This document shows, piece by piece, positions 1-51,175 of a DNA stretch of 64,000 nt. The notes beneath the pieces were generated by a model, which ran no database searches, was not told the origin of the DNA, and saw nothing but the letters and a program-made list of their open reading frames with translations. The first letter of the stretch is position 1. Each line of letters opens with the position of its first letter. A program made the position numbers and the translations under genes. The DNA is taken from assembly GCA_907165135.1 (NCBI GenBank), contig OU015567.1, forward strand, positions 3,596,001 through 3,660,000, given 5' to 3'. This DNA comes from Oikopleura dioica. Lineage: Eukaryota; Animalia; Chordata.

Positions 1-1814
1 TCATCTTTCCGCGAATCAGAGCGTTGCTTGTTCGAACTTGGAGGAGTTCTTGGTCTTCCGGTCGCAGAAGATCGATCGGATACTTATTCGATTGAATTAT
101 GTCTGTCTATTTTGAAATTTACCTTATTCATGCTGTTTTTCACAGAGCAGAGCTCCGGAAAAAGTACCACGAGGATGTTGAGTGCATCACTATCTTTGTT
201 CAGAGCTGCGTGATGCAATACAGACTCATTATCAATGTCGAGCTTCTTTAGCACAGCTGAATATTTTGACTTCATTTTCCGCAAGACATTGAGCATTTTC
301 ATATCGATCAGAATATTTGCTGGCATCGATTGTTTTGGCCAGAACTGAAAGATGTCGAAACCGTCGTCTTCGAGAATGTAAGTCAATTTCCGCTCAATTT
401 CCATTTTTCTTCATCGGAGAAGTCGGCAACATCGGTAAGCGCGTGGTAGCTCCAGTCATGGCCGTCTCGTGTTCGTGCAGGAAGAAGTTCTCGCGGAAAA
501 CGATCCGCAATACGGGTGAATTGGGCGTATGGTGCGTATTTGAGAGCAACTCCAAGAATGTTCCCCTCTGCCTCGCCTCTGTAGTTCCAGGTAACAGTTG
601 CATTCATGATTGTCGAGAGCATCTCGATGAGCCGATTCTTTTAAGTTTAACCGCGCTAGAGTTTTATTTATATAATTTTGTATGTTATCTCAACATTACT
701 TTTTGAAATTGAGAATAACATCATAAAAGAGATCCGCTGTTTCTCCATAGCTCAACCAATCAAGAGCATTCTTCGACTGAGTGTAGACCCTAAACGTGTC
801 GATGTCCCCTGTCTTAATGGCAATTTTGAGAACATATGCCACATTGCTGCCGTTCTGATCGCATTCCATCAAGAAGCGCATGATCTGATCCTGCATTGGA
901 GTCTCGTAGAGATATCCGAGCCTTAACATCCTGTGAATCAGTTAAAAGTAATGGAAACTACGTTTGATAGGACTCCAATTTTCTGTCCATTAGTGACTTG
1001 ATAGGCCAACCGTCGCCGCCAGATGCTACCTTCATTTCCGTCTTCATGTCACTTAGCACACATTTTAGAAGATGGAGCCGCTCGTCGCTTTCCCAGAATT
1101 CTATGGTGAATTAATATAAAATTGTTCTAACTTCGCTTCTTACGATGAATCATTGACAGGACCGATGGCATTTCATCTTGCTTCAACTTGTATCCAAACT
1201 CCTGGAAAATATCAATCATTTTCGCAAGTAGATATGGACCGAGTTTTCTTCCAAAAATCATTCCTTGGCCGACCACATTAGCCGCGTATTCTCTCAGGCA
1301 TCGGTGTAAAATCGACTCGCCGTTAAAATCAAATGACGATCTTTCACCTTGTGCACTTTTTAGGAGCTCTGAATAGTAATGGAACTTTACGAAACTAAAT
1401 TAATCTTCGCTACCTTTAAGGCAGATCTTTTGGCCCATGAAAGCCATTTTCATCGGAACTGTCCAAGCAGTTTCGTCGAGGACCAAGCTGTTCATGGAAT
1501 CTTGCTGCACCAGGAAAATTGTTATGTCTTTCGCGTTGGCCTCTTTTACGGATTACATTAATTATTTTATAGAAAATACTGCCTTGACTAATAGTATTTC
1601 ATGACAGAATATGTACTAATAAGTGATCCGTTACAATGGCAATGTCAAGAAGACTATATGCCCGCTGAGGTGGAAATCCAAGCGTTTGGTTAAAAGGAGC
1701 GTCGAAGGTGAGGCTGCACCAGTTCGCATTGAAGATTTGTATAAACTTCGCCGCGTTATCATATGTCAAGATTCCACGCAATCGCTCATCGAGCGCGTCG
1801 ATATTTCGAACCAT
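1..1814 (-). CDS. Multi-exon ankyrin-repeat protein, 3' end runs off the window
   Basis: Ankyrin-like motifs in successive exons: ESVLHHAALNKDSDALNILV..KNSMNK|YPIDLL, DQNGSNVAYVLKIAIKTGD, DFNGESILHRCL; short GT-AG introns. Start position uncertain. Confidence 0.6.
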
Positions 1815-1982
1815 TCTGAATCATTGTTTATACCCCTTGATAGCTTGTAGAAGGTGTAGAAAGGGGTGCAGAAAAATGCCGGAAAGGGCTGCGGCAACGA
1901 ACTACTAATAAATGTAAGCAATTGTTAATCGATCTGCCTATACAAATACAAAATGTTGTTTTTTATTATTTTACATATTTTC

Positions 1983-2180
1983 TACAAATGGCGGTGAAAG
2001 AGCTAAGGTCTTGCAGTTAACTCAAGCTAATAATGAGGTTGAGAATCGCAGTGGATTTTTTTTGTTATTTTTTACAATTTTTTTTACAAATGGCGGTGAA
2101 AGAGCTAAGGTCTTGCAGTTTACTCAAGCTAATATTGAGATTGAGAATGGCAGTGGATATTTTTTTTTTGTTTTTTCTTT
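1983..2180. repeat. Two direct copies of a ~102-bp unit
   Basis: TACAAATGGCGGTGAAAGAGCTAAGGTCTTGCAGTT starts at 1983 and at 2085. Confidence 0.85.
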
Positions 2181-2211
2181 CTTACAAACTTGCTACAAAA
2201 CCGGTGAGAAT

Positions 2212-2400
2212 CTATGATGTAGCGGTGGACTCATGCTCATTTTTGAGGTTGATGAGTTCTGTGCGCATTTCGTAGAAGTCCTGCTTCGCTTGAAGGAAGT
2301 CGATGACGTTGAGAAGAGTCCGCATAGGTGACCAGTCGGAAGTATCCTCAAGCTCCTCAAATCTCTTCAGATCATCCAGCTCTTTTTCAAGACGATCCAT
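2212..2400 (-). CDS. Small coiled-coil-like orphan ORF, probably with an upstream exon at ~2520-2600
   Basis: ORF MDRLEKELDDLKRFEELED... has protein-like composition; no recognisable domain. Confidence 0.4.
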   Translation of the reverse strand: MDRLEKELDDLKRFEELEDTSDWSPMRTLLNVIDFLQAKQDFYEMRTELINLKNEHESTATS

Positions 2401-2668: not shown

Positions 2669-4683
2669 TTAGTTAAAATTCAAAGTATCAGACAAGCTAA
2701 CTTTGACTTTCAGTTTAACAAGTTTGAATGTTTTTTCGTGCTCCTTTTTCGCAATCGAGGCCGCCTTTTCTGCTTGGCCGCGTTTTATTCTGTATACTAT
2801 CTCATCATGCACGTTTACCGCTTTTTTATAGCTGCTGATTTTACTATTCATCTTATTTTTATGATTATTTGATAATAACAGCTAACCCTTGACATAATCG
2901 ACCGCGATTTCACTGCTCTTCATCACCTCAAGGACCTTCAATGTAGTGATTTTAATCTGCTCTGTTGCGTTGCTTTGAATCACGGCATGAAAGGCTGAAG
3001 AAAATGGTTTAGTTTATCTCAAAGGACCTACTAGACACTTACCATGGAATCTGCGATGTTTATTGATAGACATTGAAGGCAAAGGCCTTCTTATCTCTCT
3101 TCCTTCTTCTGTGCAAATCATTTGATGCCGGTTAAAAGTTTGAATAACTTCACGCTTATAATCAACGAGATCTATTTCCTTAGGTAAAAAATAATTGTTT
3201 ACGCGGTACCTTTAAATTTTGACAGCAGTGATTCGCGTAGAGCATTTGCGTGGAGTGTATCTATGTTAAGGTCGCGTGCCATTGAGAACAGACCTTGATC
3301 GTACATCCACTTGTAGATCAAATCTTTAATCACTTTTCGTTTATCCTCAGGAAATAAGCCAAATTTTTCTAGGAGTGATGAGTACTTTTCAAAAATGTCA
3401 TCTTCTTTGTTGAATGTGTCCGCGAGAAAGGTACTCTTAATTTATTTTAAAAAGGCCATGTTATGCCACGTGTATTATTACGCCTGATAATCCAACAGCG
3501 ATTGAATATTCGAATTGTTTGTAGTCAATGGTAAGAAAGATATGATCTTCACCCGCAAAAATAAATTGCCGTAAACTGAGAAGAAGGGATCGTTATTTGT
3601 CTGAGATAAAGTAATGGTAAATGAAGGATCCCTTTACCATATGTTTGTCCATCAAGAAGAATGCACTTAGGATAATATTAATCTCAGAAAAGGGAAAAAA
3701 TTACCTTGGAGAGACCCTGCAAATTATAATTGGACATGTAGAGGCGACCAGTCGAACTCAAAAAATTAATTCGTTTGCAATGCAACTTTCCGTCTTTTGC
3801 AGATCTTCTAGCATTTTTCAGTTTTTTCAGTACTTTACTTTATAGGTTGCATCAACATATAATAAGATAATTTACTTAGTTTTTTAAGAGCAACAATCCT
3901 AAAGGTGTTGTACTCTGCCACGATTTTGGTGCGTTCGAATTCGTCGAAGAAAGGACGAAATTTTCCCGTGTTTATGGTAGCATGATCACTGAGCCGCCTT
4001 TTTATACCGTCAGGAACGTGACCAGAGGGAATGAAGAAATCGCAAATGATCTTTCTGAGAACATTTATCTTCGAGTAAATTTCAGCAACCTGACTATCAA
4101 TGCCCAAAGTCGAAAGTTCGTAACCTTTATTCACTCCATCCAGATGTAATACTGTATGTCTATATTCTATTTGATACAATTTAAGAAAATCTGGATTCTT
4201 CAATGATGAGTTATATGTTATGTACAGCGCCTCTAGTTTCATAAAAATTGAAGACAAATGCAAGGAGCCGCCATTGAAACCGCAAGTTTTTGCCGCTGTG
4301 TCAAGAGTCAGCTTGGCAAAATTAAAGGCATTACTATTCACTATCCAAAGCATGATTTTTAAGACAAAAATATTGTCAAATAATTTAAAAACTACTGAGT
4401 TGATTGAATTAATTTCCCAGATAAATATAAATCTGACTCGAGAAAAAAGGGCTTGAATAAGTTGATGGTTATTTGACTTGAATAAATAAATATTCTTTCT
4501 CGACAAGAATTTTATGTAAAGCTTGTCCGCGGCGATATGAACGAACGCGCAGTCCGAATCTGTTGGTAAATCAACTGTTTTTAAGTGCGCGACGTCAAAA
4601 CAGTCCGTGATCAAGAGGCGCTCTGCTTGTTCGCGGCATTCAGCAATAACAGCATCAACACGAGATTTTTGCAGTTGTTCCAT
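2669..4683 (-). CDS. Family-A DNA polymerase (PolA/Pol theta/Pol nu-like polymerase domain, no helicase domain), multi-exon
   Basis: Manual splicing gives PolA motifs in order: SSTGRLYMSNYNLQGLSK (cf. TGRLSSxxPNLQNIP); motif A LRQFIFAGEDHIFLTIDYKQFEYSIAVGLSG (cf. DYSQIE); motif B KRKVIKDLIYKWMYDQG; AVIQSNATEQIK (cf. IQGSAADxxK); motif C AVNVHDEIVY. One junction near 3,594 has an in-frame TAA or a frameshift. Confidence 0.9.
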
Positions 4684-4936: not shown

Positions 4937-6472
4937 TCAAGGTTTAAACTCGAAAGTCGTAGAAACGAATTCTTCCGCATTATTGGTATTCTGTCGACAA
5001 ACTTCCGCATGATGAGGAGAATCGTGAATGCTCACAACTTTATACATTGAGATATCATAGAACTTTCTGAGTTACATCAGGATTCAATGACAGTGAAAGA
5101 CAATCTCAAATCATATGTAACATTCCTTGTCGATGCACTTGTCAAGAGCTGGGTTCAGAAGCAGTAGTTTGCCACGCCAGAAGCACTCGCATCTGCTCTG
5201 TTGACAGGTCGCGCATTGAAGAAAGATGGCATTTTGCTTCAAATCATGACGATACCTGAACTCATTTTATGCAGAAAAATTAAGATTTAAAACACTCACA
5301 CAACAGCAATGAAGAATTTGCCGAAAATTCGTAAAATGTACTTAACCCCCTCGCCGAGATTGCGTCCGCCCGTAATCATGATCAAAATAGGCGTTCCACT
5401 GGATCCGTGTTCTGACACGGAATATTTCGAAGGAACATCGCCAGCGACAGTTCCGTATCTCGGCGAAGCTTCTCTCGCGTACTCTTCGCCAAATTGTAAG
5501 CTAATTAGAAATTGAAAGATGGTTTTCTTGCAATTAAAAACCTAAACTCCAAGCGTTTGCTTCTTTCGCGCAACTCTCGCTCGACAACTGTCCGCGTTTC
5601 GTCTTCAGTCCAAGCGATACCGGGGCAACTGTGAAACCCTCGTTCATCCATAATCGTGTAGCTGCTTGGATCGGTAAACTAAGTATTATGAGAGAACATA
5701 TGTATCACTTAAATTACCATTTTTAAAGTGGAATTGTGATTTTCATAATCGTCAAGAAGGATATGAGGTTTCAACTTCAGTGAAATCCGCCATTTGCATC
5801 GAAGACCGCTTGAGATCCCGTAGTCGCAAAAAACCCGCATATGGTCGCATCCAGAAGATTTATATGTCTTCCATCTATAAATATTTAAATAATAAAAAAT
5901 AATAATGATTCTAAACCTGCGCGCGCGATAATAAGATTGACCATCATGAAAGACGTAGATATGGCTTCGTTGATGCATGTGAGAAAAATAAGATTTAATC
6001 GCAACCAACTTCATCATGTTCTTATAAAAATTAACAAAAGTGAGATAATTAAATCTTACGAGTTCAGTATGTGCAGTTGCACTGGAGCCGTGAAAACGAG
6101 AGAGAAAATTGCCCGCATTGAAAAGGTGTACCACGTCTGATTTTCCAAAATTTTGTTTTCTTTTAACATCAGTCACCGTCAAGTCATTGTCAGGAACATA
6201 GCAGATACCATCTTCTCCGCCAGGCATTTTCTCGAGTAAAGACTAAAAGTGTATAACCCACGATGGCGAATTATGAATACCTTGGAAGCATTGCCCTGAG
6301 CTATGAATCTCCGCGAATTACTTGGGCAATGGGCATTAGTCTTCTTTGTTTGAATGAAAGACTGAGCGTTACACAAGTCATCTTCGTTTCCGGAAGGTAT
6401 ACCCCTGAGAGAAATGATATCATCGATATCAAGTATATGCTTCATCGCATTCTCAGCAGTCATTGTAACCAT
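4937..6472 (-). CDS. Multi-exon protein with two WRKY/FLYWCH (GCM1-fold)-like zinc-finger domains
   Basis: Spliced reading YVFHDGQSYYRARRWKTY..RVFCDYGISSGLRCKWRISLKL..GFHSC, then a second unit FRYRHDLKQNAIFLQCATCQQSRCECFWRGKL..HDSPHH. Last intron not resolved. Confidence 0.6.
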
Positions 6473-6825
6473 CTAAAAGGACATTAGGAACAGTCTTAAA
6501 TAAAGAGTTTTTGAATTTACCATTGGGATGGTGGAGGTAGACAGCTCATGATTTACGGAATGGGTGAAAAGGTTATTTCTTTCGCTCTGTGTCTTGATAG
6601 TCACCATCTATATGCTTATGAGAGAGAGAAGAGACAAAGCTGGATTATACCATTGGAATGCAAACCTGGCCATGAGTAACTTCATCGCCACTTAACGAAG
6701 ACCCTTGACGACGATCACCCCCATCGACTTCCATATTCAATCATTCGATTACTAAAAAATAAAAGAAAATACAAAAATGCACAAATATTCTGTTGAGACA
6801 GCGAATAATGAGACTTTTGGATAAG

Positions 6826-9800
6826 TTATTCATCATCAGAGAGGGACTGTTCTCCCGACTTATAATCATAGACGTATTCTTCATAGTCATCATCGGTTGC
6901 AAACGATTGACCGTCATATTGCAGCGGCTCATCAGATGAGTCGCTCACCGCATCAGATTTCCGCGGGGAGTCGTCTTCGTAGTCGGACTCACCGGAAACA
7001 TATACCTCAGAGTCACGATAGCCGCCTAGAATTTCATCTCCCTCTGAGTGATTGTCACCTTCGTCGCTCAGATTGTTTGCCTGGGTAGAATCATTGCACT
7101 CATGGCGTTTGTTGGACCCCGCGTCATCTTGCAGCTGCTCATCGGAAGAATCGCTCACCACCACCGCAACAGATTTCCGCGGGGGGTAATCTTCGTAGTC
7201 AGACTCATCAGAATCATATACCTCGGAATCACGATAGCTGTCCGGCATTTCTTCTCTCTCTGCGTCACTATCACCTTCGTTATTCCGATTATTTGACTCG
7301 ATAGGATCATGAGACTCATGGCGTTCGTTCAGCTCCGCGTCATTTGCATACTCATCACCCTCGCCATGATTGCTATCGTCGTATTCATCACCATCTTCAA
7401 AATATTCGTCGCTCTCATACTCTGACTCTCCACATTCATCACCACTGTTACCATTATAGCTTCTATCACTCTCGACAGCTTCATCTTGATCGATAAAATC
7501 ACGAAGTGATCCTTCAGAATCGGAATCATAGGATCTTTCGCTATCATCGCCCAAAGGATGAACATCTTCAATTGGTGAATCGCTGAAAGGATGCGAAAGA
7601 ACCGAATCCATACGCATAGGAGAGGAAACTGGGGCAGCATGCTCATCAGTACAAATTTCATCTTGAGTGGGACATTCTTCAGCAAGCGTTTTGGAAGCGC
7701 CAATCGATGAGCAAGCTAAACAAATTTTATACAAGCCGCGATAAACACAAACCTTTCGATAGTTGCGAATCATCATTTTCCACGGATCGAGCCAAAATAA
7801 TGGGCGCATCAACCAGAGACGAATAGGGATCAGGCGAGGCAAGCGAAAATTCACTCATCTGCCTTGACAGCGGAGATAAGAAAGTAGTGGACGAACTGGA
7901 AGAAGCCACACAGGTAGATTCGGGAACAGTCTCTGGGCTCTTCTGACTGCATGTCAGCTTTTTTGTCGCGGAAATAGCTGGTACATCATCAATGTGATCG
8001 TGAGAAACTACCGCGGAGTTGGTTATCTGCGTCTTTGAGGTGCGAGTTTTCTTTTTAGCCGCGGAAACAGCTGGAATGAATAAGTCATTAATTTTCTCTG
8101 AGGTAGAAGGAACATCGGGATTGAAGTCATCAGCTGCGGAGTTAGCTGTCATTCGATCATTCGCAATAGAAGAAGCAAGTTTTTCCTGAAATCCCGGACC
8201 AAGGTCAATCTCAGCATCATCATTAACCGAATGAGATACAGAATTGATAAGTTCTTCGTCAATAAGTTCTGCAAATTGTGACGTATCAACAGAGTCTTCC
8301 GGGCCAAAGCATTCAAATTCTTCCATTGGAATAGGGTTGATAGTCGCATCAGGTTTAAAGAGATTTCCAAGAGATGGAGGGGGGACCACAAATTCTTCCA
8401 ATGAACCGCCAACATCTTTGACAATGGTAAGATCGCGAAGAATAGATACAAATCGATCAAAATCTCCCGGGGTGATAGTCTTGTCCTCCCGCATTGCAAT
8501 CTTTTTCGACCATTCAACAAGACAATAAATGGTGTTAACCGAGTTCAGTTCTTCTGTAGTTTCATTTCGATATGTAAATTTGCCGCATGAAGTCTCGGTA
8601 AAATGTTCCTTCAACCATCGCGAATTATTTTCGATGTACGGCGTGATGGTTTTCGCGCGTTTCACAACATACCGCATGTGCATCCGATTAATTGAGCTTA
8701 ATACAACTTAGGATGGAAAAGATAATCACGAATACCTGTGCTTCGCCTCATTTGAATTCGTGGTCATATCGAAGCCGACGACAAAATTCTTGTCCTTCTC
8801 GACTTCGTTGTACCATGAATAACTAAAAACTAAAACGCTATTTCACATGATATAGTTCACCTTTCCAGAGTCTCTCCGCTGAACATCAAAGTCCAGTATT
8901 CCACAATTTCATCCACAAAGTCATCGACCGATTTAGTTTTTCCATCGGGAAAGTAATACGATTGATCATCGTTCTTCTTCTTCTTGCCGGTTATTGCGAG
9001 TTTATTCCGCCATGAAAAACGCGCATGTTCGCCGATTTTGTGAATCAAGTTGATAACGATTCCAGGGTGGACGAATTTCTAATTACACAAAATGTAACAA
9101 ATAACAGCAGTTATAACTTACGCAAGCCATCAAATGATTCATCGTCTTGTAATGATAGTTGGATAATCGTTTACGACCGCTGTGACCAGATACAAATCGC
9201 CGTAGATTACACCAGCTGTGATAATTACACGACAAAACCGGTGAATTCACGCATACGCCATGCTTCGCCGCGGCTAACTTGAACCCATTTTTCGCCGCAA
9301 GCTCCCTGTGCAATATAAGTAACGTAAAAAGAATAAAAAACTTACATATCGATCTTTAATTTAACCCGCCCTATTTTCTTGCCGCAAGCTTTGACATCAG
9401 TGAAGAGTTTATCGAATACACGCTCATAGAAAATTTCATCCCGTTGATTTGAATAGCCGTGCCAGCCTAAACATTCGTAAACGTATACCGTCAAAGAATA
9501 GCTTACATAAGATAGAGGCACACTTCTCGTCAGACACCCAAAAATCCAGAGAAATCAGATAGTACTGCGTGTAAAGACCAGCGGATTTAAATGTACCGTC
9601 CGCGCTGATGACTATGAAAATAGATGAAATTCACATATGAACAAAAATAAACTACCTTGACAATCTTCATTCCAGTAGATTGCAACGTGATGACGAAAAC
9701 ATCCCAGAAGATACTCCTTATGCTTTTCTTCGTCGAAAACCGTGACTTCTTTCATAACTCTCGCAGGAGAAGACCGAAACGATATCTTCATGTGCTTAAT

Positions 9801-12620
9801 AAATTAATAAAGAGAAAATAAATTATTCCATACTTCTAGATGAACCGAAGGGCAGACGGTAGATTTTGTCTTCCAATTCTTCTGATTGCGATACTGAATT
9901 TTATTCCGGATTTGCGTTACGAAATCACGCATGCCATTGGGAGGGTTAAAGTTGAAAGTATCACAAAGAGTTTCAACTTCACGGTAAACATCAACAGTGT
10001 AATGCATCTTCGCTAAATCGGACATAACCCCCATCACAGCCGGCCGCATATCATTATCCTCATTGAGAGGCCTAAATATAAATAAAATAGGAAAATGCAT
10101 TAACACATACTTGCAACAATGGGGTTTCGTGACACGACGTCTCGGAATTGCGTAAAGTAAGCCACCAATTTCTTTAGTCCTCTCCTGGTAAATCGTCAGG
10201 GACGTATTGTTCTTCGACTTTTGATAGACAATGCTGTCATCAAGAATAGCAAATTTGTAAGTTTTATCGCATTTTTTCTTCGATTCGTCCGCGTTCAAAA
10301 GATTTTGAGATTCTACAAATTTCCATTCGGAGATAGTCTTCTGGTCTTTCGAAATATAATGTACATTTTCTGTCCACGTAGATTTAGGATCGTAGTTTCC
10401 ATCAGGAGAAAATGGACGAGAAGCCTTAGTTACATCGTAAACTTTATCGCGTTTGCACCGTAAGATGAGATAATAGATATCATCGTCATGATCGAAGTAG
10501 ACTTGTTTCACCGCGAAAAGTCTGTAGCCATCATGTTCGCGAAGAATAAAATTCATCAGCTTGGACCCGTCAGAATAAAAACGGATTATCTGCGGAGGGG
10601 AAGATAAATACATCGTGATATCAGAGAATTTTCCAGCGATGAATTCCCTCCACTTCATAGCCTTCAGATTGTAGCAAGGAACGGGGGGAAGTTTAACAAA
10701 TTCGCATGTTTTTTTAGACGGTTCAGCCAGCTCAGTTTCAACAGCGCGACGCGCCTCAAAGTAATCAGCACGCTGGGTACGGTGCCTATCGAGAACATCT
10801 TGATGAAAAACTTCATCATCTTCCCCTTGAAGATCATCAGTGTCTTCATTTTGAGGAGCTACACTTTCTTCGCTTTCAGAAGAAATAAGCAGCTCAGAGA
10901 TATCCGCATGGTGAATGATAGGAGGTAGACGATCAACGGGCTTTTGTCCAACGGAAGAATCTTTCTTGCTTTGAACAGCGATACAGTTACGTTTTTTTTT
11001 TCTTGATGGAGCAGGAGTTGTGGTTGTACTATCGCGCACTTTACCAATAGATGACTTGCCGCTAGTAGATGTTTTTGTAGAATTCAAGGATCTTTTCGAG
11101 CCGCTTGACACCGACTGACCGGAACTACTCAGTTGACCATCGCGCGCTTTAGCTACAGGTGGTTGACCGCGAGTAGATGTTTTTGTAGAATGCGGGGATC
11201 TTTTCGAGCCGCTGGATACCGACTGACCGGAACTACTCAGCTGACCATCGCGCACTTTACCAACAGGCTGTTGACCGCTAGTAGATGTTTTCATAGAATG
11301 CGGGGATCTTTTCGAGCCGCTAGACACCGACTGGCCGGAACTACTCAGCTCATTCTTACGTAAAGGTGCAGGGGTCTTCAATCGTTCTTTCTTATGAACA
11401 ACCCGTTTACTAGCATTAGATGATTCATTGCGACGCCGTTTCATAGTTTTGTCAACAGGAGCAATATCAGGTCCATAAATAATCTCATCCATAATCTCAC
11501 CATCGTCAGCCAGAGCAGCCACTTTCCGTTCCTTCTTTTTGAAAGCACCAGATACAGTAGCGCTGACCGTCTCACCGAAGCTCTTTACTCGGGAAAAGGC
11601 ACGAGATGCGACACTGCCGGAACCTTTCGATTTCGGCTTCTTAAAAAGCTTGTTCTTAGTAGTTCGATCGAGCTCAGCCTCATCAATCTTCTCTTGCAAT
11701 TTGTCAGCCATCTCAACTCGTTTCATGCTCTCTTTGACGGTAGGAAAATTCGAGTAAACCGGCAATTCATTACTCGAAACTTTCTTGGGAGGAAGTTTGA
11801 TAAGTTCATTCTTCGCAACCGTTTTCTTCTTTTTCGGAATGAGTACAGAGGAAACCGCGCCATGAGTTTTTTTCTTTTCAGAAACGCGAGTGGTAGAGGA
11901 CGCGGCAGCGGTAGTAGTACCAGCACTAACAGTCTTCAAAGGTCGAGACGAGGCAGAATCAGCAAGTTCGCGGGGTTTGTTCTTCGTTACCTTACCATCC
12001 TTGGAACGAGGAGGCATCTGAGGACAACGCTTATTATCAACGCTATCGATCGTAGAAGGCTTTTTAGACTTGGCAATACTTCGCGAGGGTTTCTTCTTCA
12101 GTGGCTTTGCATCCTTGGAACTAGAAACCTTCTGAGGAACACGCATATTGTCAGAAGCACGCTGAGTCGTAGAGGGCCCTTTAATTGACGAAGCAACAGG
12201 CGGAAATTTTCTGTGGTAATCGGGACTATCAGGATCGAACCGCATAGGGGACTGGGAGTCAGCACACGCACGTTTCAACACGGACGAGATTGTCTCACCC
12301 TTATCCGGATTACGCACTACGGGCTTGTTTTCGCCGCCAGACAACTTATGCGGAACTTGACGATCCTTATTATCGCTTCCAGAATCGTGACGCGACGAAA
12401 CATTGGACTCCATCAAGACGCGGCTCTTCACAGGCTGGATATTCTTCTCATTGACCGACTTAGGCGGCTTGGGCAACACTTTCATGTTGGTATCAGGACC
12501 CCGCTTTGTAGTCATAGTAGAAGACGAGACCACATCCGAAGCGAGAGAATTCTCGTCCTTCTTTTTGTCCTTACGCGACCGAGAAGTTTTCCATTCACCA
12601 GCGCATTCGTCACCGGACAT
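6826..12620 (-). CDS. MULE (Mutator-like) DDE transposase, 1,824 aa, 9 exons, uninterrupted frame
   Basis: Exons 12620-9834, 9794-9656, 9611-9507, 9466-9346, 9305-9122, 9078-8861, 8822-8736, 8696-7753, 7715-6826 join in frame via GT-AG introns of 37-44 nt. Motifs: VISADGTFK (D1, ~9,600), KIDMELAAKNGF (D2, ~9,350), CNYH (CxxH), TTNSNEAKHSSIN (E, ~8,750), plus an upstream HDGYRLF..LRCK..PHCC WRKY/FLYWCH-like domain. Confidence 0.9.
11030..11355 (-). repeat. Three in-frame 108-bp (36-aa) tandem repeats in the transposase N-terminal region
   Basis: LSSSGQSVSSGSKRSPHSxKTSTxGQxPVxKxRDGQ repeated three times. Confidence 0.9.
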
Positions 12621-12673
12621 TGTGATTTCAGACTAAACAAACAAAATATAAATTATTCGCATAAATATGTAAT

Positions 12674-12940
12674 CTATTGTGACCAGGTATAATAACCGAG
12701 AAGACCATTAAGGAATACTATATCATTAGCAGAAAATGAATAGTTGCAGTGCGGACATCTTCCGGTAGTTAATTCAACAAGACAGCGAAAACATAGAACA
12801 TGACAGCAAGAACGAAACCGCATTGGAAAATGAAATTGATAATCAAATACACCCATACAAATAGCACAGGATAACCGATATCGAATTGGCATTCTACACA
12901 TGATATGATTAAACAAATTTATAAAAATAGATGAACACAA
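12674..12940 (-). CDS. C3HC4 RING-finger exon; probably the 3' end of a gene with hydrophobic upstream exons reaching ~13,850
   Basis: CAICMGVFDYQFHFPMRFRSCCHVLCFRCLVELTTGRCPHC; upstream exons not resolved in frame. Confidence 0.75.
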   Translation of the reverse strand: MCSSIFINLFNHIMCRMPIRYRLSCAICMGVFDYQFHFPMRFRSCCHVLCFRCLVELTTGRCPHCNYSFSANDIVFLNGLLGYYTWSQ

Positions 12941-13906: not shown

Positions 13907-13931
13907 AGGCCTACCGGCCTAAGGAAACCCT
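13907..13931 (+). other. Conserved 25-bp hairpin motif AGGCCTMCCGGCCNNAGNAAACCCT, copy 1 (others at 23,889 and 38,782; weaker at 29,452 and 30,158)
   Basis: Visible near-identical copies with the same spacing and orientation. Confidence 0.75.
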
Positions 13932-17774: not shown

Positions 17775-17913
17775 TTTCGCCAACTGTTTAAAAAAGATAT
17801 GTTTCTTTTACTGCGAATAACTTCCTTTTTGATCCCCACTTTTCAGCCACTTTTCAAGCACAACAATTGTAATAAAGTAATCAATTAAGACAGTGAAAAT
17901 TATCGGTCGAAAA

Positions 17914-18582: not shown

Positions 18583-18649
18583 AAACCCAGTAACAACAGA
18601 ATTCCTTACGAATAAAAAATTCAGAATTCGAAAGGTAGACGAATCAGGC

Positions 18650-23882: not shown

Positions 23883-24048
23883 AGACATAGGCCTCCCGGC
23901 CGAAGAAAACCCTTATCTTGTTTCTCATGTATTACTTTTCTAATGGTGCACTGTTTCAAAGATTATTTGCCGTCACTTTGTTTTTATTTCTTTATAATAG
24001 CCTTACAAGTAACAATTGTAGCCCATTGACAGCATTCGGTATTCAGCA

Positions 24049-28640: not shown

Positions 28641-30812
28641 GGAAAAAAATGCCCAGCATTTAACATATTTAAGATTACCTCTGCCCTTAAACAATTTCTG
28701 TAATAAAGAAAATGATCATATTATAAAACGATGTAAAAACAATCATTTGTTTTTAAATCACGGACTCCATCAAATTCTTTCTCAAACAGTCAGCGTTCAC
28801 AATAACTTACAGAAAAGCTTATTTGCATGCAATGGAATGTAAGCAAATGCTCAGAACTCAGTCATGGTGACCTCTTACTCAAACTCTTGCAAACCATCAA
28901 CATTCAACTATGAACTTCTATGAGAGAATGAAAGCCCCTCCAAATGTCTCGCGCGTATACTGACCATAACAGCCATGAAAGACATTCCATCAGCAACAAT
29001 CGCATCCGACAAACATGATGACCTCGGAATCAAATAGGCGGCCTGCAAACGTTAGGTAGCGGCGGCTCAGCACGAGATAAATAGAAGTTGTATAAATTAA
29101 ATTATCACTAGATCTTAGGAAAAGAATCGAGTTTGTTAAAACTTCTCAAAGGACGTCGACGAAACTATAATGACAAACTAAATAAAAATGAAATAAAAAT
29201 AATTATTATGGGTTCTTATTTTAATAATATTTTTTTATGCATTAAATCACGCGGTAAAAACAACTTTTTCAACAATCAAACTGCGTTATCTTCGTCGGCT
29301 TATTAAGTAGATGCTAATATGCTTAAAAATGAATGCTCACGATGCTTGAAAATGTAAGGATTAAAATATTCAAGCGCGGTGTATGGACGAAGTTTGAAGA
29401 CAAATCAATCGCAATCAATGCCACTCAAAAGTAACATTTGAAAGGAGTTAGAGGCCTCCCGGCCTACTTATGCCCAGTTGATTTTGCGTTATTTTTAGTT
29501 CGCGTTGCGGCTACCGGCATTAACAACCATTTTTTTCAAAGCAGACACAAAGAGCCTTTTCTATTCTGTACACATCTTTAATCTCACCGAGTCACAGAAG
29601 CAACCTAATCCCGCCCCGGCGATTTCTAACGATTGAACCTGATTCAAGAATTCTCATGAAGCGAAATCAAGGAAGAAAACGAAATCGATATTAATTACAG
29701 TAGAACTTATGCGTCACTTTTGCTTTCGGTAAGTTTAAAAACACCCGCAGTTGACGCGCGCCTTTGATTGTTAATTGGCCCGACTGTCCCAAACCGGAAA
29801 GATTTATAGGTGTCCCGAACCAACGGCTTTTACTGTATATAAACAGAAACTGATCTATCAAATTGTAAAACTGACTAAGAGTGATTCGTATCCAGAAAAC
29901 CGTAACTCTATTCTAATTGTTCTTGTTATGTATATTTTTACGAAACTTATTTGATCCCTAAATCTAATCCATAAGAAACTCGAATCCAATATCGATAGCT
30001 TAGTTCATAAAGCCTACTTTTGATTCAAAAGTCTTGATACACCAGTATTCAAAAGCCAAGCAAACTTATCATGTTCCTGCGATACCTGATGATCAATATC
30101 ACATCACTTATTTTTGCCGCGAAAGTGCTATTTCAACCCCATTTTTTAGACTGTGAAAGGCCTCCCGACCCTCTAAAAACCCGGCTCAGGGCCCGGACTT
30201 TCTTTCGCCCCAGTCAGATACCCTTAATTATTACACTAACACCCTTAAAAATATAGTGTAATTTCTAAGGTTTTTTTATGGTTTCTATATCTTCGTATTT
30301 CCGCGTGTTTATTATGCTTTATTATCGTTATATTGTGCGGTTTTTATTTGTATAAGTTTTAATCATGAAGAGGTACAGACGGAGCTGGAGTAGCGAAGAA
30401 ATTTCAGAAAAAGTCTCTGTAGAAAACCACATTCAGACTGCTCTTTCATCCACATTCTCATTGTGCAGTTTTCTTGGCGAAACATCTTTCCAAAGGCGCA
30501 TACAAGTGAACAGATATAATTCCGCGACTTAGGACGGGCTCGATGTTTCACTAAAAAATATGGTCAATTTGAGCAATTAAAATTTCAATTATAGGATTAA
30601 TGATTTAAACCTGTAGACAAAAAAATCAAATTCATTTCTAGTGGCGGAGTAGCGGTGGAGTTTTCTTATCTGCAAAGCACCACCAATATTCGACCCAAAC
30701 GCGCCAAGAAATTTCTTACCTAACGCCAGTAAATAAATGAAAAAGAACCTCGTAGGTTAAATGCGTAGGTTTTGCCGACGATAATTAAGAAAAATTTTCA
30801 TCCAAAGTCAAA

Positions 30813-33766
30813 ATGAATACATTTAAATCAATTAATATATCTGGCGTGGATATCAAGTTTCCATATGAGGCATATCCAGAACAAAGAGAAATGATGAAAA
30901 GATGTATCGACTCACTGAAAAAGAGGTTAGAAAACTTACGTATTAAATTAACCAGTTCAAGATGCCACGCGGTCCTAGAGTCGCCGACTGGAACAGGAAA
31001 GACAATCACGCTACTTGCCTCGGTACTTGCGTTTAAAGAATGGGCAAAAAACCAAGATGACTTCGACGAGGATGATTTACCGAATATAATATATGCTTCA
31101 AGAAAGGGTATAAAAAATTTTCGAAAATATATAATAAATAAAAACACCCCAAAAACAGAACTCATTCACAACTAACGCAAGTCGTCGAAGAACTAAAAAA
31201 GCTCCGGGATATATGCAAGTATCAATTTACGATGACTGTCATCGGAGGACGAAAAAATTTATGCGTAAAAAATGATGTGCAAAATATTGCAGACACTACG
31301 GATCAGCAGATTAGCTGCAGAAAACTGCGTAGAAACAATCTTTGCCCATACAAAAAAAAGAAGCGGATAAACTTGTAACAATTGGAAAAGACACAACAGA
31401 AGAGGAGAGTTGTACTACAACTAACGCAGAATTACTGATTTCATCAATGAATGAAATAATGGACATCGAAGAGTTAGGTGAATGGTGTAAAAACCCACCA
31501 GATATCGCAAAAGAATATATAGGAACCGGTCGACAATTTTAAAAAGAATGATCAAAAATTCACAATGGAAACCGACAAAGCGAATTCAGCAGAAGGGAAA
31601 AAAGTATGCGGGTATTACCTTTCTCGAGGAAAAGCTCGCAGTGCAGACGTTCTTCTGATGCCATACAACTACATTCTTGAGAAGAAGATAAGAACGAATA
31701 GCAAAATTGAAACGGCGCAGAAAATAATCATCATCGACGAAGCTCATAACGTGGAAGCGGTCTGTGAAGAGAGCTCATCGCATAACCTCACGAGAAGAAT
31801 TATTTCAATGGCTAGAGATGAACTCGGTGAAGCGAAAATAAAATTCGACAAGGAAAAAGAATCTATCGACATAATCACAACTCCACGAAAAATAGAAACA
31901 ATAATAAATGGTAATTCATCAATCATTAGCCGCAAATAACAAATTTAGGAATGAAAAAATTGGAGTTGGTGTACGCGCAAAAATACAACGAGTACGGAAA
32001 ACAAGAGGGAAAGAATTTCGATATATCAGAACTTATCAATGACGCGGAAAGAAACGGACTTATGAGAAACACAAATGAGATATGGAAAAACTTAACGAAA
32101 AATGTCAGTGCGTATTTTGCATCGTCACAAAGAAAAACACATCTTTCGGGTAATAAAATCAGTCTTAAAATACAAGCTTACGCATAATCAAGGAAAAAAT
32201 TTCGAATTATTCGCCTATATGATGGAAGAATTGATTTCGATCCGCAACGAGAAAAGACATCATGAGTAAGACGTTATGATAATAATTATGCTTATTGATG
32301 ATTTAAGTTACAGAGCGAGACTATGCAAAGATAATAACGATAGATTCGGTTACAATCTCAATATCTGGTGCTTCAACGCGAAATACGCAATAAAAGATTT
32401 ATCAGAGGTAAGAAACCCTGAATAAGTTTATAATCAAGAAAAAAAATCTAGGAAGGAGCAATATATAATCTTATCCTCACGTCGGGTACACTCGCACCAA
32501 TGCAAACTTATGTAGACGTTTTGGGCCTCGACGAATCCGGCAAAAAAACAATTCAGTTCCAGAATCAACACATCATCAAAAGCGAACAACTTTTAGCTGT
32601 CACAATAACAGGATACGAGAAGACAGAATTCAGAAATATATACAAAAACAGAAACAACGACGATATGTTTTTGAAATATGCGAAAATCATCAGTAAGAGA
32701 AATCATATAGATGTCTTCTTAACTTATTTAGGTAAAATTAAAGAAGTTGCGCCTGGAGGATGCCTGATTTTTCATCCAACGTATAAACTCATGCGGAAAT
32801 CACTGAATATTTGGGGAATAAACGATTACAGCGCGACATTCAAAAACATGTTCAAAGTCCCGGTTTTTGTCGAGCCAGAAAACAAAGAAGAAACGATAAG
32901 AGTAATTGAAAATTATGAGCGCGAATTGGAACACGATGAAAAACAGGGCGCAATACTGAACGGTGTTTGCAGAGGAAAGCTTTCTGAGGGGATAGACTTT
33001 AAGGACAGTAGAGCACGAGTCGTTATTGTAACAGGTAACGAAAATCTAACAATAATATATAAAATCACATGAAGGAATACCGTATCCACCAGTAGAAGAG
33101 CCACGAATCAAGGAGAAAATGGATTATCTGGACAAAAGAATAAAAACAAAGAGTGGTGAGTTATCGGGAAGAGAGTGGTATAAACAAGGAAAGTCATTGA
33201 AATTATAACGCATAGAGTGATAGATATTACCATGACAAACTTAGAGGCAAACAGAGCGGTAAACCAAGCCGTTGGACGAATTATCCGACACAAAAACGAT
33301 TTCGGCGCCATAATATATCTCGATGCGCGATTTACAAAATATGATGGAGACCGAATTTTCAAATATATGCCGGAATGGATAAAGTGCAGTCACTCGGTGG
33401 AGGTAGGAAAGCAAATAAAATTTGATACAAAAACAATTATAGAAAAGTGTTAATGCGCCAGGCAAAATAAGGCAATTTTTTAACAAAATGGAAGCCTTAC
33501 AAATACGCGGAAAGATAACACCTCCATTGCCATTGCGACAAGAACGAAAAACACGTAAAGAATGCCGCGTTGTGAAAGTAAAAGAAACGACAAGGCAAAA
33601 GAATCGACGATTAGAACTCGAACAAGAGGCGGATGAAAATACCATCGAATCACCAAAACCAGAAACCGGCACAAATCAAACATTACAAATATTTTCAAAC
33701 AAGAAATCAAAACGAAAATTTGCAATTGAATACGGACCAACAATTATGAACAACTGCAACCGCTGA
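30813..33766 (+). CDS. RTEL1: RTEL1/FANCJ-type (XPD/Rad3 family, Fe-S) 5'-3' DNA helicase, multi-exon
   Basis: FPYEAYPEQ; LESPTGTGKT; YASR|THSQL; GRKNLC..C..C (Fe-S cysteines); [76 protein letters not shown]. One 1-bp shift in an A8 run near 31,350. RTEL1 is preferred over FANCJ by eye only. Confidence 0.9.
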
Positions 33767-35729
33767 ATTATAAAAAATAAATGTCAAGTTCTAGTCATCA
33801 TGCGATCATTCAATTTATTAATTCACATGAACGCGACCAACAAAGTTTCAGAGAACGTTTTCCGGGGCGATAAATTCATCCTCCTCGTTTCCTCCTCGTT
33901 ATCATAAAGCCAATGGCAAAAGTGCCCGCTGTAACTTACTGTCCAGGAGTCGATTAAAAATATTCATTTCCGCATCCGTCAGCATTTCAGAAACAACAAT
34001 TTCATCTTCGATTTCTGATTGCCCGGTGAGCTTTTCGTACAAATAACGCGGCTAAAACAACCACCTATTTTATCATTCTCCCAGATCATGTGATTACAGG
34101 TCTATTTGTAGATAAGGTAAATCGAAAAAATAATAATAAAAAACAAACAATAAAATACAAAAAAAATAAAAGTTATGGTGTTACAATTATTTACAAAAAA
34201 TATTCAGTAATCTTAAAAAACCCGACACAGCAGCAGAGAGAGGATCAGCTCATCTTCACTGCCTTTTGTAATTAACACGAGCTTTGTTGTTTTTGCAAGC
34301 CTTTTGAGGCTCTGCGATGCCTTCGTCTGCACCTTCTTCGAAGCACCAGCGAGTCTTATTAACGGTCGAAATAGTAAAATTTCTTTTCCGGTAGCTCCAT
34401 GAAAAGGTTATTATGTGGATGGCGTGAATGCCGTATTCAACGCGGATAATTCATAAAGGTTTAGACGACGCGGAAATTTATTACGTTCAGGAAGTGTTAG
34501 CTACATCAGAAGAAGATCATTTTTATCTACCGATTAGTTTTTGTTTAATTAAATTCATAAAGAGGCAAGTTTATTTACCATTATGGTTTTTCCATAAGTT
34601 CAGTCCTTATTGATTTTCTACCGAAGAGTCAATGTCTTCTATGAGTTAACAGTCATCCATGCTTTATTTCGTCCGAGCCTTGTGAGGTTCTGCAAGCCTT
34701 TGATAGCTACACAGTTCCGCGGCAAACAATTAAATTTATTTTATGATTATCTTTCGCTCAAATATCCAGAATATATATAAGAATTTGTAAACATATATGG
34801 CCAAAAAAAATTAAATAAAAAAATCAAAGGTCATACTAAAATATAAATTATTATGACGTTTAATTAAAACCTTGTAAAGAACGCATTAGCCAGTCAGAGA
34901 TAAACGCGAAAAAACGTAATTGTTGGAAATTCGGATAGTCCTGAACGAAAAGATATGACGCGGTAATAAACACAAACAAACACAACACTTAACAAAAAAG
35001 TTTTAACCCAAACCTTAGATTCAGATGTCTTTGTCTGAACCTTCTTCGATACTCCAGCTCTAACTGAAATTGAAGTCTGCGTCTGAAATCTTTACTGAAG
35101 CCGCGTAATAACACAAAGGTCAGATTCGTAGCCTGTTTCAACGCCTGTTTCAACGGCTCAAAATCCATCGCCAAAACAATGCCTCAGAAGGAACTGTTAT
35201 GGTTTTAGAGACAACGCGGCCAATAAATGCAATTTTATCTATGCCATTATTATAATAAAGCAAAAATCGGCAACCTTTAAAAAATAAATAATCTATAAAA
35301 ACGCGAAACAGAGGCTCTGTAAATAAAATCAAAGCTAAATTTGCAGAAGAACGAAAGAATTTATACCTATTTCTGCTCCAGAGTCAAATCATCTAAAGAG
35401 TCTTGCCTCTTCTACGAAAATCTACGATATTTTTTTTGTATCGATTAATTTTTGTTTAATAAATATTATAAAGAGACAGGTTTATTAAATCTTATGGTTT
35501 TTATTATTTAAATTATTATTATAATTTAATTAAAGCGGCATTAAGAAAAGTGCGCGAAAAGGTCTACCAATGGTAGATATTTGAACCAGCACCCAATTTG
35601 AAAATAATTTGAACCAGCTGGTCAACAATATGAGACAATAAATTTCCGCGTCCATCAATGGCATCATGACAGGTGTTGAGTTTCCCTTTACCCATCGAAG
35701 AATTAAAGATACCGGGATAGCTTCTTTCA

Positions 35730-35990
35730 TCAAACACCGCATACATAGCCAGAACAGCACAACCAAGCCCAAACAAGCACAAGAGCGCACAGAAAATGAA
35801 ACAACACAAAGAAAAGACCGAAAAAAAAACCATAAAAGAATAGTATCAAATGAGAATATATATATATACAGAAATAAATAAAAATGAGAAAATAAAAATA
35901 AATTCGGTTAATCCCAAAAACCCACGACTGGAGCATTATGACGAGTAATTTAACACACATAAACACAAAAAAAGTCCCAATAACCAAGTC
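35730..35990. repeat. Direct duplication of 38,500-38,780 (one of several reshuffled segments in 34.2-38.8 kb)
   Basis: Shared GCGCACAGAAAATGAAACAACAC...AATCCCAAAAACCCACGACTGGA...AAGTCCCAATAAC. Confidence 0.85.
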
Positions 35991-37552
35991 AATAACCTGT
36001 GAGATAACAAGATGTCAAACACCTTAGAAGAGGATAATTTTTTTGTATCGATTAATTTTTGTTTAATTTAAATCATATAGAGACAGATTTATTTATTCTT
36101 ATGGCTTTAATAATTTATGTCGATTATGACGCAGTTCATCAAATGAGTCATTGTTGATTTCAAGTTTTGAAGCTTTTTCAAACCAGATGTCTTACATCCA
36201 TATTAAAGCGGCATTAATACACTCACCTCTGTTCCATTGACGCGGTCGAGTCTCTTCAAATTCGTTGATCAGTGTGCTACTAAGAAAAGTGCGCCAACAG
36301 GTCAATTAATTTCCGCGTCCATCAATTGCATCATGACAGGTGTTGGGTTTCCCTAAACCCATCCTAAAATTTAAAATGCCGGGATAGCTTCTTTAATCAA
36401 GTAAACCGCACAATATAACAATAAAGAAGCCAAATAAACAAACGAATATACAAAGCAAAAACCATAACAAAACCTTAGAAATAAAACAATATATATAATC
36501 TTAAAAAAATACTTATGAAGGAATAATAACAATTTTGTTTATACTGTTTCCAATACCAATTCTAACTGAATGCCTCTTCTTAACTGCATATCGCCCCCGT
36601 CTGATCCAGAGATGGAGACTCGCAAAGGCAGTCGGAATGGACATAGTCCAAGTCTCATAGAACATCCATATCCCGCAAATAACAAAGTAAAATGGCCAAT
36701 AACGCATATCAGACTTTCTATCGATTTAGATCTAGTTGGATCTGTTTGCCGGAAATCTCGTTGACCGACACGCGGCACTGGGCGGCGCTTCTCGTCGCTA
36801 GAATTTCCTCGACGAACGTTTTTCTTGATCGGGAGCGGCCAAAACCCTTCATGAGGATTTTTTCACGCTTGACTTTGAACTTCTCCTTTGCGATCAAACC
36901 TCCGGCGAGCTTCAGCACCCTAGAACAGGTAAAGAAAGAGCGGGAGCTACCATTTTGGACTACCTCTTTTTGCCTTGGTCCATGCTGTTGGATCTGATTT
37001 GTACGCAAATCTGCGAGCTGGTAATCCACTGAGGCCGTTTACAAAAAGTATAAATGGATTAAATTAGACGTAACTTACCTAAGGTTGAACTCTAAGTGGA
37101 GATAGGAGAATCTGAGCGTCTTAGGCGCCGTAACGCTCGATCTGAAGCGCGCCTAATTCAGCGCCAAAACTGGAGTTCGTCTTCTCGATTCAGTGATTGG
37201 CTGAATCCTTTCATTTCCGCAGAAATGCATTTCGAGATCCTTCTGAAGCGCAAAGGAAAATTTCTAGACTTCCCTACGAGTGATCTGCGCGGGAAACGGG
37301 AAAGGGAACCCGGGGGCTTTCTCCACTTAGAGCTCAACTCTATGGTAATTCCAAATAACAAGCCGCGAAAAATTATTACGAGTTTAAAAATCAAAAAACA
37401 GAAACCATAATAAAACTTTAAGAATTACACTATATATTATATATTTAAAAAAAAACATATGATAGAATAATAACAGTTTCGTTTATAATGCTTCCAATAC
37501 CAATTCTAATTTAGTGCCTCATCATAACCGTGAATCGCCCCCGCCGCATCCT

Positions 37553-38147
37553 GACGATTTTCAATAAGGATTTCTGAGTGAAATCCTGACCCCCCTTTTT
37601 TATTAGCTCATTGAAAAGAGCGTAAAAAGTTATCCCAGATTTCCCCGGAAAAGGATGAAATTTCCGAAGAAATAGCGTCATGGCACGTGACTGAAGTCCC
37701 AAAAGTACCAAAACTTTCCCGCCCGGGCATTTTCGACTCGTCTGAGCTAATAAGGTTTGTAATAGCTCAAAATGATCGTCTCTGCGAGCTCTTGGTGGGC
37801 ATCAAGTTTTCTTCCCTCTTCAACCCTTTTTCATCCCTTTATCTATTGCTCGAAAAATAGAAATTCAAAAAAAAGGGTTGAAAAGGGATGAAAACATGAT
37901 GCCCAGCAAGAGCTCGCAGAGACGATCATCTTGAGCTATTACAAGCCATATTAGCTCAGACGAGTCGAAAATGCTCGAGCGGGAAAGTTTGAGTTTTTTG
38001 GGACTTCAGTCACGTGCCCTCACATCATTTTTTCGAAAATTTCATCATTTTCCGGGGGAATCTGGGATAACTTTTTACGCTCTTTCCAATGAGCAAATAA
38101 AATAGGGGGGTAAGGATTTCACTCAGAAATCCTTATTGAAAATCGTC
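37553..38147. mobile_element. Foldback MITE, ~285-bp TIRs, 3-bp flanking CCT duplication
   Basis: CCT|GACGATTTTCAATAAGG ... CCTTATTGAAAATCGTC|CCT; arms are reverse complements over most of their length. Confidence 0.85.
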
Positions 38148-38802
38148 CCTGGCTATTAGCTGGCGAAACAGTCGACAAAGGACGAAGAGCCGCTTCCGTC
38201 GGACTGCAAACCGGAGAAGCCCAAAACAACTTCGCATTCCAGAACCATAAATTCCGAAGATATTCATGCATTCCCCAATCATACTCTACATTACACCGCA
38301 TACATAGCAAAACAGCACCACCGAGCCCAAAAACCAACCAAAACGGTTATTACTCGTATGCGGTCCATAATGACGTACCTTAATAATAAAAGCCGCGAAA
38401 AATTATTACGAGTTTAAAAAACAAAACAGAAACCATAATAAAACATTAAGAATTACACTTTAAATAGTATCTTAAAAAAAAAACATATGATAGAAACATA
38501 ACATAGCCAGAACAGCAGAACCAAGCCGAAACAATAAACCAACGCGGTTAATGACGCGTATATAAATTGAACCAATAAAAGCGCACAGAAAATGAAACAA
38601 CACAGAGAAAAGACCGAAATAAAAAACCATAAAAGAATAGTATGAAATGAGAATATATATAAACAGAAAAAAATAATGAGAAAACTAAAATATTTTCGAT
38701 TAATCCCAAAAACCCACGACTGGACCATAATGACGCGTAATTTAACACACAAAAACTCAAAAAAAGTCCCAATAACACATTAGGCCTACCGGCCTGAGTA
38801 AA

Positions 38803-39219
38803 CCCTGATTTTTCTTATTTTTTTCCACGAGTCGTATTCACACCCTTGATTTTTCTTATATTTTTTCCACGTCCCATTTTCACAACCTTGAATTTCTTTT
38901 TTCCAAGACCCATATTGAAATGCTAGAAAAACTCTTATGGCACTCGACAAAAAATCAAAAAACGTTTCCTTTTTTCCTCGTCCACTCTTAACAGTTCCTT
39001 TTTTCCTCGTCCACTCTTAACAGTTCCTTTTTTCCTCGTCCACTCTTAACAGTTCCTTTTTACCTCGTCCAAGCTTAAAAGTTCCTTTTTTACTCGTCCA
39101 AGCTTAAAAGTTCCTTTTTTACTCGTCCAAGCTTAAAAGTTCCTTTTTTCCTCGTCCAAGCTTAAAAGTTCCTTTTTTCCCCGTCCAAGGCTGAAAAGTT
39201 CCAAAATTTGTATTATGCC
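38803..39219. repeat. Candidate right TIR of the giant element: ~40-bp repeats, then about eight 29-bp tandem units, ending CCAAAATTTGTATTATGCC
   Basis: Unit GTTCCTTTTTTCCTCGTCCAxxCTTAAxA from 38,964 to 39,202; sharp junction to host sequence at 39,220. Confidence 0.7.
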
Positions 39220-40852: not shown

Positions 40853-40883
40853 GGAAAAACTTTCATCGGAAAACTTTCATAAG

Positions 40884-51135: not shown

Positions 51136-51175
51136 CTGATAAAAGTTTTCCGAAGGAGATCAAAATTTCTTCTCA

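Follow-up and report, generated by a model that had tools for sequence, protein, structure and literature searches.

How does a transposase-like gene come to stand among genes for a DNA polymerase, a helicase and a RING-finger protein in one compact stretch of animal DNA, and is that stretch a mobile element or a settled part of the host genome? The locus that raises this question lies on chromosome 2 (chr2) of Oikopleura dioica OKI2018_I69, at chr2:3,596,001-3,660,000 (OU015567.1, GCA_907165135.1). These 64,000 nucleotides are referred to here as the window, and positions are those of the window unless marked otherwise. A preliminary description had interpreted its first ~39 kb as a giant transposon of the Mutator-like element (MULE) type, carrying a set of DNA-repair and cohesion genes as cargo. 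We show here that the first ~34 kb of the window has an old counterpart on the PAR chromosome (PAR), and that the two copies of this block match gene for gene. On the chr2 side the sequence compared was the window plus 3.2 kb to its left, from 3,592,826, with negative positions lying left of the window; the fetched chr2 locus was identical to the window over 1-22620. On the PAR side four overlapping loci were merged into PAR 16,992,891-17,041,577 (OU015568.1), numbered below in 'par' coordinates. Copy counts refer to assembly GCA_907165135.1.

A block shared by chr2 and PAR

When residues 600-1330 of the transposase-like protein g4875 were used as query, exactly one other protein was found, OKI2018_I69.PAR.g13228 (1703 aa, 58% identity). 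The similarity between the two loci takes in the neighbours of these genes as well: tblastx aligned ~60 segments, all of them keeping strictly to one order and orientation, the first at window -3047 (par 5095) and the last at window 33744 (par 47516). The block so defined spans 36.8 kb on chr2 and 42.4 kb on PAR, with the copies at approximately chr2:3.593-3.630 Mb and PAR:16.998-17.040 Mb. The order common to both is an exon left of the window, an ankyrin-like gene, a polymerase gene, a 271-aa gene, g4875 or g13228, a RING gene, a kleisin-like gene, a large Lys/Glu-rich gene, a short repeat and a helicase gene. Beyond the helicase gene no similarity between chr2 and PAR was found, and the right limit of homology is at 33744, not at 39219 where the end of a ~39-kb block had been placed. 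The features of the window that concern us are these:

87-1820, minus strand: ankyrin-like gene, covered by two annotated models (696-1495 and -403 to 404)
2672-4683, minus strand: family-A DNA polymerase gene, POLN/POLQ-polymerase-like, from Pfam, NCBIfam and motifs
4943-6734, minus strand: gene without assigned function, annotated as 271 aa at 5296-6734
6829-12620, minus strand: g4875 (CAG5110476.1), transposase-like gene, 1811 aa, 10 exons, with the putative DDE core coded at ~8738-9612
12677-14904, minus strand: unannotated RING-finger gene, with the RING exon at 12677-12940 and further conserved exons to 14904
15676-18573, plus strand: weakly kleisin-like gene, annotated at 15964-16742 with the N-terminal exons omitted
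18648-19282 and 22061-23024, no strand: two arrays of a satellite with a 268-271-bp unit, from z-tested unit alignments
23435-28436, plus strand: large Lys/Glu-rich gene without assigned function, colinear with PAR by tblastx
30245-30343, no strand: short repeat upstream of the helicase gene, with a copy also upstream of the PAR helicase gene (par 43504-43643)
30789-33763, plus strand: Fe-S DNA helicase gene of the FANCJ/RTEL1/XPD family, the last gene common to the PAR copy
34500-39202, no strand: repeat-rich non-coding stretch outside the block, without similarity to PAR

The two copies agree gene by gene and intron by intron, including two inverted satellite arrays, and the polymerase motifs as well as the DDE, CxxH and W residues of the transposase-like protein are kept in both. 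In g4875 and g13228 the intron positions are the same, with exon lengths of 79, 46, 36, 40, 61, 72 and 29 in the former and 79, 46, 35, 41, 61, 71 and 29 in the latter. Synonymous divergence (dS, NG86) between the two genes is saturated and not computable, while nonsynonymous divergence (dN) is 0.29-0.42 in the conserved core. With matching genes, introns and satellites on the one hand and a saturated dS on the other, it follows that the block was copied long ago as a unit and that both copies were kept. The copying happened once, as DNA, and took the introns and the satellites between the genes along, with the order of the genes unchanged. Both copies appear to have been retained since then under purifying selection, as judged from dN against the saturated dS and not from a fitted model. 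The expectation that colinear blocks would be found in several copies thus held in its minimal form, as one second copy of the whole gene set on PAR.

Relatives outside this assembly are few. A 1.2-kb contig of run SRR23998797 is colinear, has the same introns and is about equally distant from both paralogues, and a contig from a Tara Oceans metagenome holds a more distant fragment of the g4875/g13228 family. Scans of JGI metagenomes and of IMG/VR returned no relatives. A word-filtered phmmer search of a 5.8-billion-cluster collection, covering lengths of 516-1641 and 996-3169 aa for the core and 234-745 aa for the DDE part, returned no homologue of g4875 besides g13228. Given the saturated dS, the shared introns and the distant contigs, the family is old and conserved at the protein level, and in the collections searched it is confined to appendicularian-like DNA.

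The genes of the block

The gene at the centre of the block, g4875, encodes a protein with disordered ends, Ser/Lys-rich and acidic, around a conserved core at residues ~600-1330, and its nine introns of 37-45 nt are typical of the host. In a phmmer search the C-terminal third of a 942-codon ORF of the window matched this protein at 100%. The Muta1 study characterises MULE and hAT transposases by a DDE triad (D214/D283/E419 in Muta1), to which belong a (C/D)(2)H motif 15-45 residues past the second D and a W that precedes the E (PMC5499845). In g4875 each of these elements can be read directly, as ISADGTF (D967), KIDME (D1037, +70), SCNYHSW (C1064-x2-H1067, +27), W1175 and TNSNEAK (E1197, +160 from D1037), and D967, D1037, C1064/H1067, W1175 and E1197 are all kept in g13228. 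The combination of DDE, (C/D)(2)H and upstream W that marks a MULE is thus present in g4875 as a reading at the level of motifs. The correspondence with Muta1 and other animal MULEs extends to details, with a D-D spacing of 70 compared to 69 in Muta1 (D214/D283), the (C/D)(2)H motif 27 residues past the second D, the W ~20 residues before the E, and an 'ADGTF' motif at the first D (PMC5499845). Two coding tandem repeats fall in the disordered regions of the gene (108 bp x 3 at 11031-11350 and 216 bp x 1.9 at 6946-7348).

The profile evidence does not follow the motifs. Neither g4875 nor g13228 has a Pfam or NCBIfam match even at E ≤ 1, and no MULE, Transposase_mut or IS256-type match for g4875 was obtained by profile, by homology or by PDB profile search. 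AlphaFold2 (AF2) models of the DDE region, predicted alone and with 4 sequences, had a confidence (pLDDT) of 33-34 and were unusable, and a zinc finger of the FLYWCH, WRKY, SWIM or similar type had no Pfam match in residues 600-900 or in the whole protein. Unlike Muta1 and the animal MULEs, then, g4875 lacks a Pfam MULE/Transposase_mut match and a detected FLYWCH, WRKY or SWIM domain; it is 1811 aa long with nine introns, no terminal inverted repeats (TIRs) or target-site duplications (TSDs) were found with it, and it is present as two ancient copies rather than a family. We regard g4875 as a good lead for a MULE/hAT-type DDE protein rather than as a proven member. What stands of the intact MULE transposase first described here is the DDE/CxxH/W signature, in g4875 and in its paralogue; support from profiles, homology or fold did not come.

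The other genes were examined through a Pfam survey of stop-to-stop open reading frames (ORFs), run in four batches with cut-offs of 55-65 aa depending on strand and region, with single exons followed up. The claims of a family-A polymerase and of an RTEL1/FANCJ-type helicase are borne out by it. The polymerase gene has a Pfam DNA_pol_A match of 1.3e-6 on the exon at 3202-3441, a match that, coming from a single exon, does not reach the whole-protein cut-off, and NCBIfam PolI (DNA polymerase I) matches of 0.004-0.005 on the exons with motifs B and C, at profile positions 684-758 and 836-883 of 889. All catalytic motifs are present. The motif TGRLYMSNYNLQG is readable in both copies; motif A is DYKQFE at 3526-3509, motif B is RKVIKDLIYKWMYDQG within 3202-3441, with the pattern R-x3-K-x3-Y-x3-Y and the Tyr of the POLQ/POLN type, motif C is VHDE within 2672-2881, and the PAR copy has kept all three. 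On PAR the gene lies at 16919-18922(+) of one of the four fetched loci, where exon 1 forms an uninterrupted ORF of 333 codons with 45% identity to exon 1 on chr2, which is likewise intact. Like the polymerase domain of POLN and POLQ, this gene has the Y-for-F motif B, a DYxQxE motif A and a VHDE motif C; unlike them, it has no helicase domain and is too divergent for a match to PDB sequences. The exons gave only chance matches there, and no helicase or exonuclease signature was found in the gene.

The helicase gene has the Pfam domains DEAD_2 (1e-22), Helicase_C_2 (4e-16) and HBB (0.008). This is the domain set of FANCJ/RTEL1, and FANCJ is the best solved relative, being the top PDB match (3.6e-17) before XPD and CHL1. 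It matches par 44469-47516 with 50-80% aa and 74-75% nt identity, and the PAR model has the same DEAD_2 and Helicase_C_2 domains.

A RING gene had also been claimed, and its exon at 12677-12940(-) is supported by Rtf2 (4e-5) and zf-RING_2 (0.003) matches. It stands directly upstream of g4875, as an exon or gene separate from it, and matches par 23245-23621 and 25298-25432 with 59-68% aa identity. The polymerase gene and the RING gene are both missing from the GCA_907165135.1 gene set in either copy, so that, whichever origin of the block is preferred, the current annotation misses two polymerase genes and two RING genes.

The remaining members are less well defined. The kleisin-like gene has a Rad21_Rec8_N match on 15820-16209 (E = 0.0019) that, at 18.8 bits, falls short of the cut-off of 23.1, and the gene matches PAR with 35-45% identity in the N-terminal exons and 40-63% in the 3' exons. 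Of the Rad21/Rec8 kleisin first described, this sub-threshold match is what remains, since the paralogous exon on PAR has no Pfam match and the C-terminal winged-helix domain was not found in the Pfam ORF survey. Similarly, the ankyrin gene keeps a weak, sub-threshold Ank_5 match (E = 0.0095 on ORF 87-410), together with a colinear paralogue on PAR (par 12543-14224, 39-69% aa identity, a 526-aa gene). Neither the 271-aa gene, whose PAR homologue is annotated as part of g13228, nor the large Lys/Glu-rich gene has a Pfam match. The latter contains a coding tandem repeat (422 bp x 3.4, 26339-27795), and its PAR homologue is split into models of 190 aa and 967 aa by an inserted gene. This insertion is a Tc1/mariner-like gene of 661 aa in a single exon (PAR 17,029,595-17,031,577(-)) with a weak DDE_3 match (6.5e-5) and a match to HTH_Tnp_Tc3_2. 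An RMI1_C-like OB fold and WRKY/FLYWCH genes, which had completed the proposed cargo, gave nothing in the ORF surveys at E ≤ 0.01 and nothing on the main exons at E ≤ 1. The whole window had no match in Rfam, and a look-up of the exact product of a 938-aa ORF found none on record.

Resident module or mobile element

How, then, did the block come to exist twice? The interpretation we prefer, and to which we give about an even chance, is that of a retained duplication of the block between chromosomes, by now a module resident in the host and built on a MULE-like gene that was domesticated. A multigene block would have been copied between chr2 and PAR in a single ancient event at the DNA level, with both copies kept, and the module would be centred on a domesticated MULE/hAT-type DDE protein (g4875, g13228) that retains its catalytic residues, with the RING gene, the POLN/POLQ-like polymerase and the FANCJ/RTEL1-like helicase beside it. 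The existence of one paralogue only, the intron-rich, host-like genes, the shared introns, the strict colinearity, the saturated dS beside a moderate dN, the conserved catalytic residues and polymerase motifs, the homologues in run SRR23998797 and in the Tara metagenome, and the failure to find TIRs all support this, as does the independent Tc1/mariner-like insertion that the PAR copy gained later. Domesticated MULE transposases are well established in plants as FHY3/FAR1 and MUSTANG, which have generally lost the catalytic residues and act as transcription factors. On this reading they resemble g4875 in being Mutator-type proteins encoded by immobile, intron-bearing host genes under purifying selection; unlike them, g4875 keeps the catalytic signature and travels with polymerase and helicase genes.

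O. dioica has no classical end joining and an extremely scrambled genome (PMC12426944). The module probably acts on DNA breaks or on rearrangement in a species without that pathway. A duplicated, conserved module that combines a transposase-like nuclease with an intact catalytic signature, a polymerase and a helicase is a candidate for specialised processing of DNA breaks or for rearrangement in this lineage.

Several observations weigh against a resident module. For a plain segmental duplication it is unusual that all of the ~nine genes survive in both copies past synonymous saturation and have stayed colinear in a genome where almost no synteny is described as remaining (PMC12426944). A DDE gene with an intact catalytic signature lies at the centre of the block, and the RING ORF adjoins this transposase-like gene, a pairing also seen in 'Ghost' MULEs, which lack TIRs (PMC6446971). 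Within each copy the left and middle satellite arrays face in opposite directions, and they are more alike there than between copies, as transposon ends would be. The block genes are all highly divergent from canonical repair genes, and the case for purifying selection compares dN to a saturated dS.

Much of this would suit a giant DNA transposon that takes cargo along and owes its mobility to the MULE-like DDE protein, in which case the two copies would be diverged family members at unlinked sites and the polymerase, the helicases and the RING protein would serve the element. In its favour are the copying of the whole gene set, DDE gene at the centre, in one piece onto another chromosome, the catalytic signature that is intact in both copies, the survival of every gene in its order within a scrambled genome, and the finding of the family only in appendicularian-like DNA. 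The RING ORF beside the transposase is again in its favour (PMC6446971). The 'Ghost' clade, to which we liken the block by description only, shares with it this pair of ORFs, the lack of detectable TIRs and TSDs (for the block, in the sequence reached), and an intact DDE domain that suggests domestication; unlike the block, its elements are a few kb long and come from arthropods and cnidarians (PMC6446971).

The inverted satellite arrays, which co-vary within each copy, are a possible sign of transposon ends. The two middle arrays are inverted relative to a related left array at window -2307 to -1098, and the layout is the same on PAR (left par 7571-9204, middle par 30196-32141). Consensus units align with z of 7-31 against shuffled controls, left and middle units only as reverse complements, and pairs within a copy score 65 and 71 compared to 49 and 45 for the positional counterparts between copies. 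Such likeness within a copy would be expected of co-evolving transposon ends, and equally of gene conversion in cis between inverted arrays. Neither sharp ends nor a TSD mark the arrays, and the two copies remain homologous beyond them on either side.

Further points count against the transposon. There are two copies only, both ancient, and single old copies would be hard to maintain by selection on the element. The genes are host-like and intron-rich, and none of the tests for a MULE by profile, homology or fold succeeded. No TIR was found in the sequence that could be reached: searches around g4875, within 1-40000, between the 3.2-kb left extension and the window and between the left flank on PAR and the right flanks gave matches at chance level only, and the true ends of the block lie beyond this sequence. 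Nor is the sharp junction inside a host exon, proposed at 39219, real. Just 31-32-aa TTG ORFs cross the site, which has to its left a tandem array of a 29-bp unit (x 8, last position 39202) and to its right a recent local duplication of 98.9% identity (starting at 39269). Finally, known MULEs and Pack-MULEs do not exceed ~7-10 kb, and the efficiency of cut-and-paste transposition drops with cargo above 6 kb (PMC6431247, PMC13359780). What survives of the cargo-bearing giant transposon family is therefore its colinear second copy, set against two ancient copies, no TIRs in the sequence reached and a junction that is not there. We consider a transposon origin possible but doubtful, and the block is probably not a giant MULE that is mobile at present. 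Should it be a transposon, it would have no precedent as a giant DDE element with a polymerase of family A, and its size would far exceed that of any known MULE.

A more specific form of mobility, which we think unlikely, is that the block represents an undescribed appendicularian giant mobile element, in which a MULE/hAT-type DDE recombinase goes with a family-A polymerase, a RING protein and helicases of the Fe-S and perhaps also the RecQ type, organised or bounded by inverted satellite arrays and moved between chromosomes as a ~40-kb unit. Polinton/Maverick, Teratorn and Starship elements offer a comparison, being tens of kb long and copied as a unit with a recombinase and replication-type genes (PMC6431247, PMC11162782). 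They differ in their machinery, which is PolB plus an integrase of retroviral type, piggyBac joined to a herpesvirus, or a tyrosine recombinase, and in having defined ends and several copies, and none of them pairs a MULE-type DDE protein with a family-A polymerase (PMC6431247, PMC11162782).

That two related large DNA viruses were endogenised independently is very improbable. There is a viral look to a set of divergent genes of the replication type (polymerase, helicases, RING, ankyrin-like) of which two colinear copies have drifted apart, but large eukaryotic DNA viruses have family-B polymerases and not family-A ones. No capsid, packaging or integrase family was found in any ORF survey, and the scan of IMG/VR found no relative. 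The nine spliceosomal intron positions shared in one gene mean, moreover, that the common ancestor was already intron-rich, which does not suit separate viral integrations.

As for an ordinary host stretch with normal single-copy, repair-like orthologs as chance neighbours, for which annotation as ordinary host genes, a typical gene density and the failure to find TIRs could be cited, we find it scarcely credible, because a second, full colinear copy on another chromosome contradicts single-copy orthologs at one locus, the polymerase and RING genes lack annotation, and the members are too divergent for core orthologs, the polymerase being without a PDB match and the kleisin below cut-off.

Repeats and genes beside the block

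The left flank of the PAR copy carries a RecQ-family helicase gene at PAR ~16,992,891-16,994,426(+) (TIGR00614, 1.2e-17) and a 589-aa gene in whose translated ORFs C2H2-type zinc-finger motifs can be seen by eye.

On chr2, the non-coding stretch at 34500-39202 consists of a 595-bp palindrome, local dispersed repeats and tandem arrays of 42-bp and 29-bp units (38802-39202). The palindrome (37553-38147) is near-perfect, with arms 88-89% complementary, and stands amid the local repeats of 34.5-38.8 kb; no TSD of 7-11 bp was detected around it. Inverted copies of the short repeat that precedes the helicase gene are found here as well, at 36403-36610, 37386-37554 and 38421-38503. This dispersed repeat may be a miniature inverted-repeat transposable element (MITE)-like sequence or a conserved regulatory element.

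From 39269 to 52400 the window contains a gene family in tandem and inverted paralogous copies. The segment 39269-39716 equals 43473-43920 at 98.9%, 40023-40855 equals 43911-44742 at 97%, and 40921-42138 recurs inverted as 51095-49858 at 77%. One paralogue is split by ~3 kb between 210-bp direct repeats (45456-45663 and 48670-48881, 89%), possibly the remnant of a long terminal repeat (LTR) element. Further right, nested inverted tandem arrays at 54465-55467 have a foldback-like look, in that a 10-bp unit, repeated 9.8 times at 54465-54562, stands opposite its reverse complement (x 7.8, 54838-54915), as does a 38-bp unit, repeated 3.2 times at 54954-55077, opposite its inverse at 55345-55467. 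Near the right end of the window there is a protein kinase exon at 60823-61128(-) (Pkinase, 9.5e-13), which is unrelated to the block.

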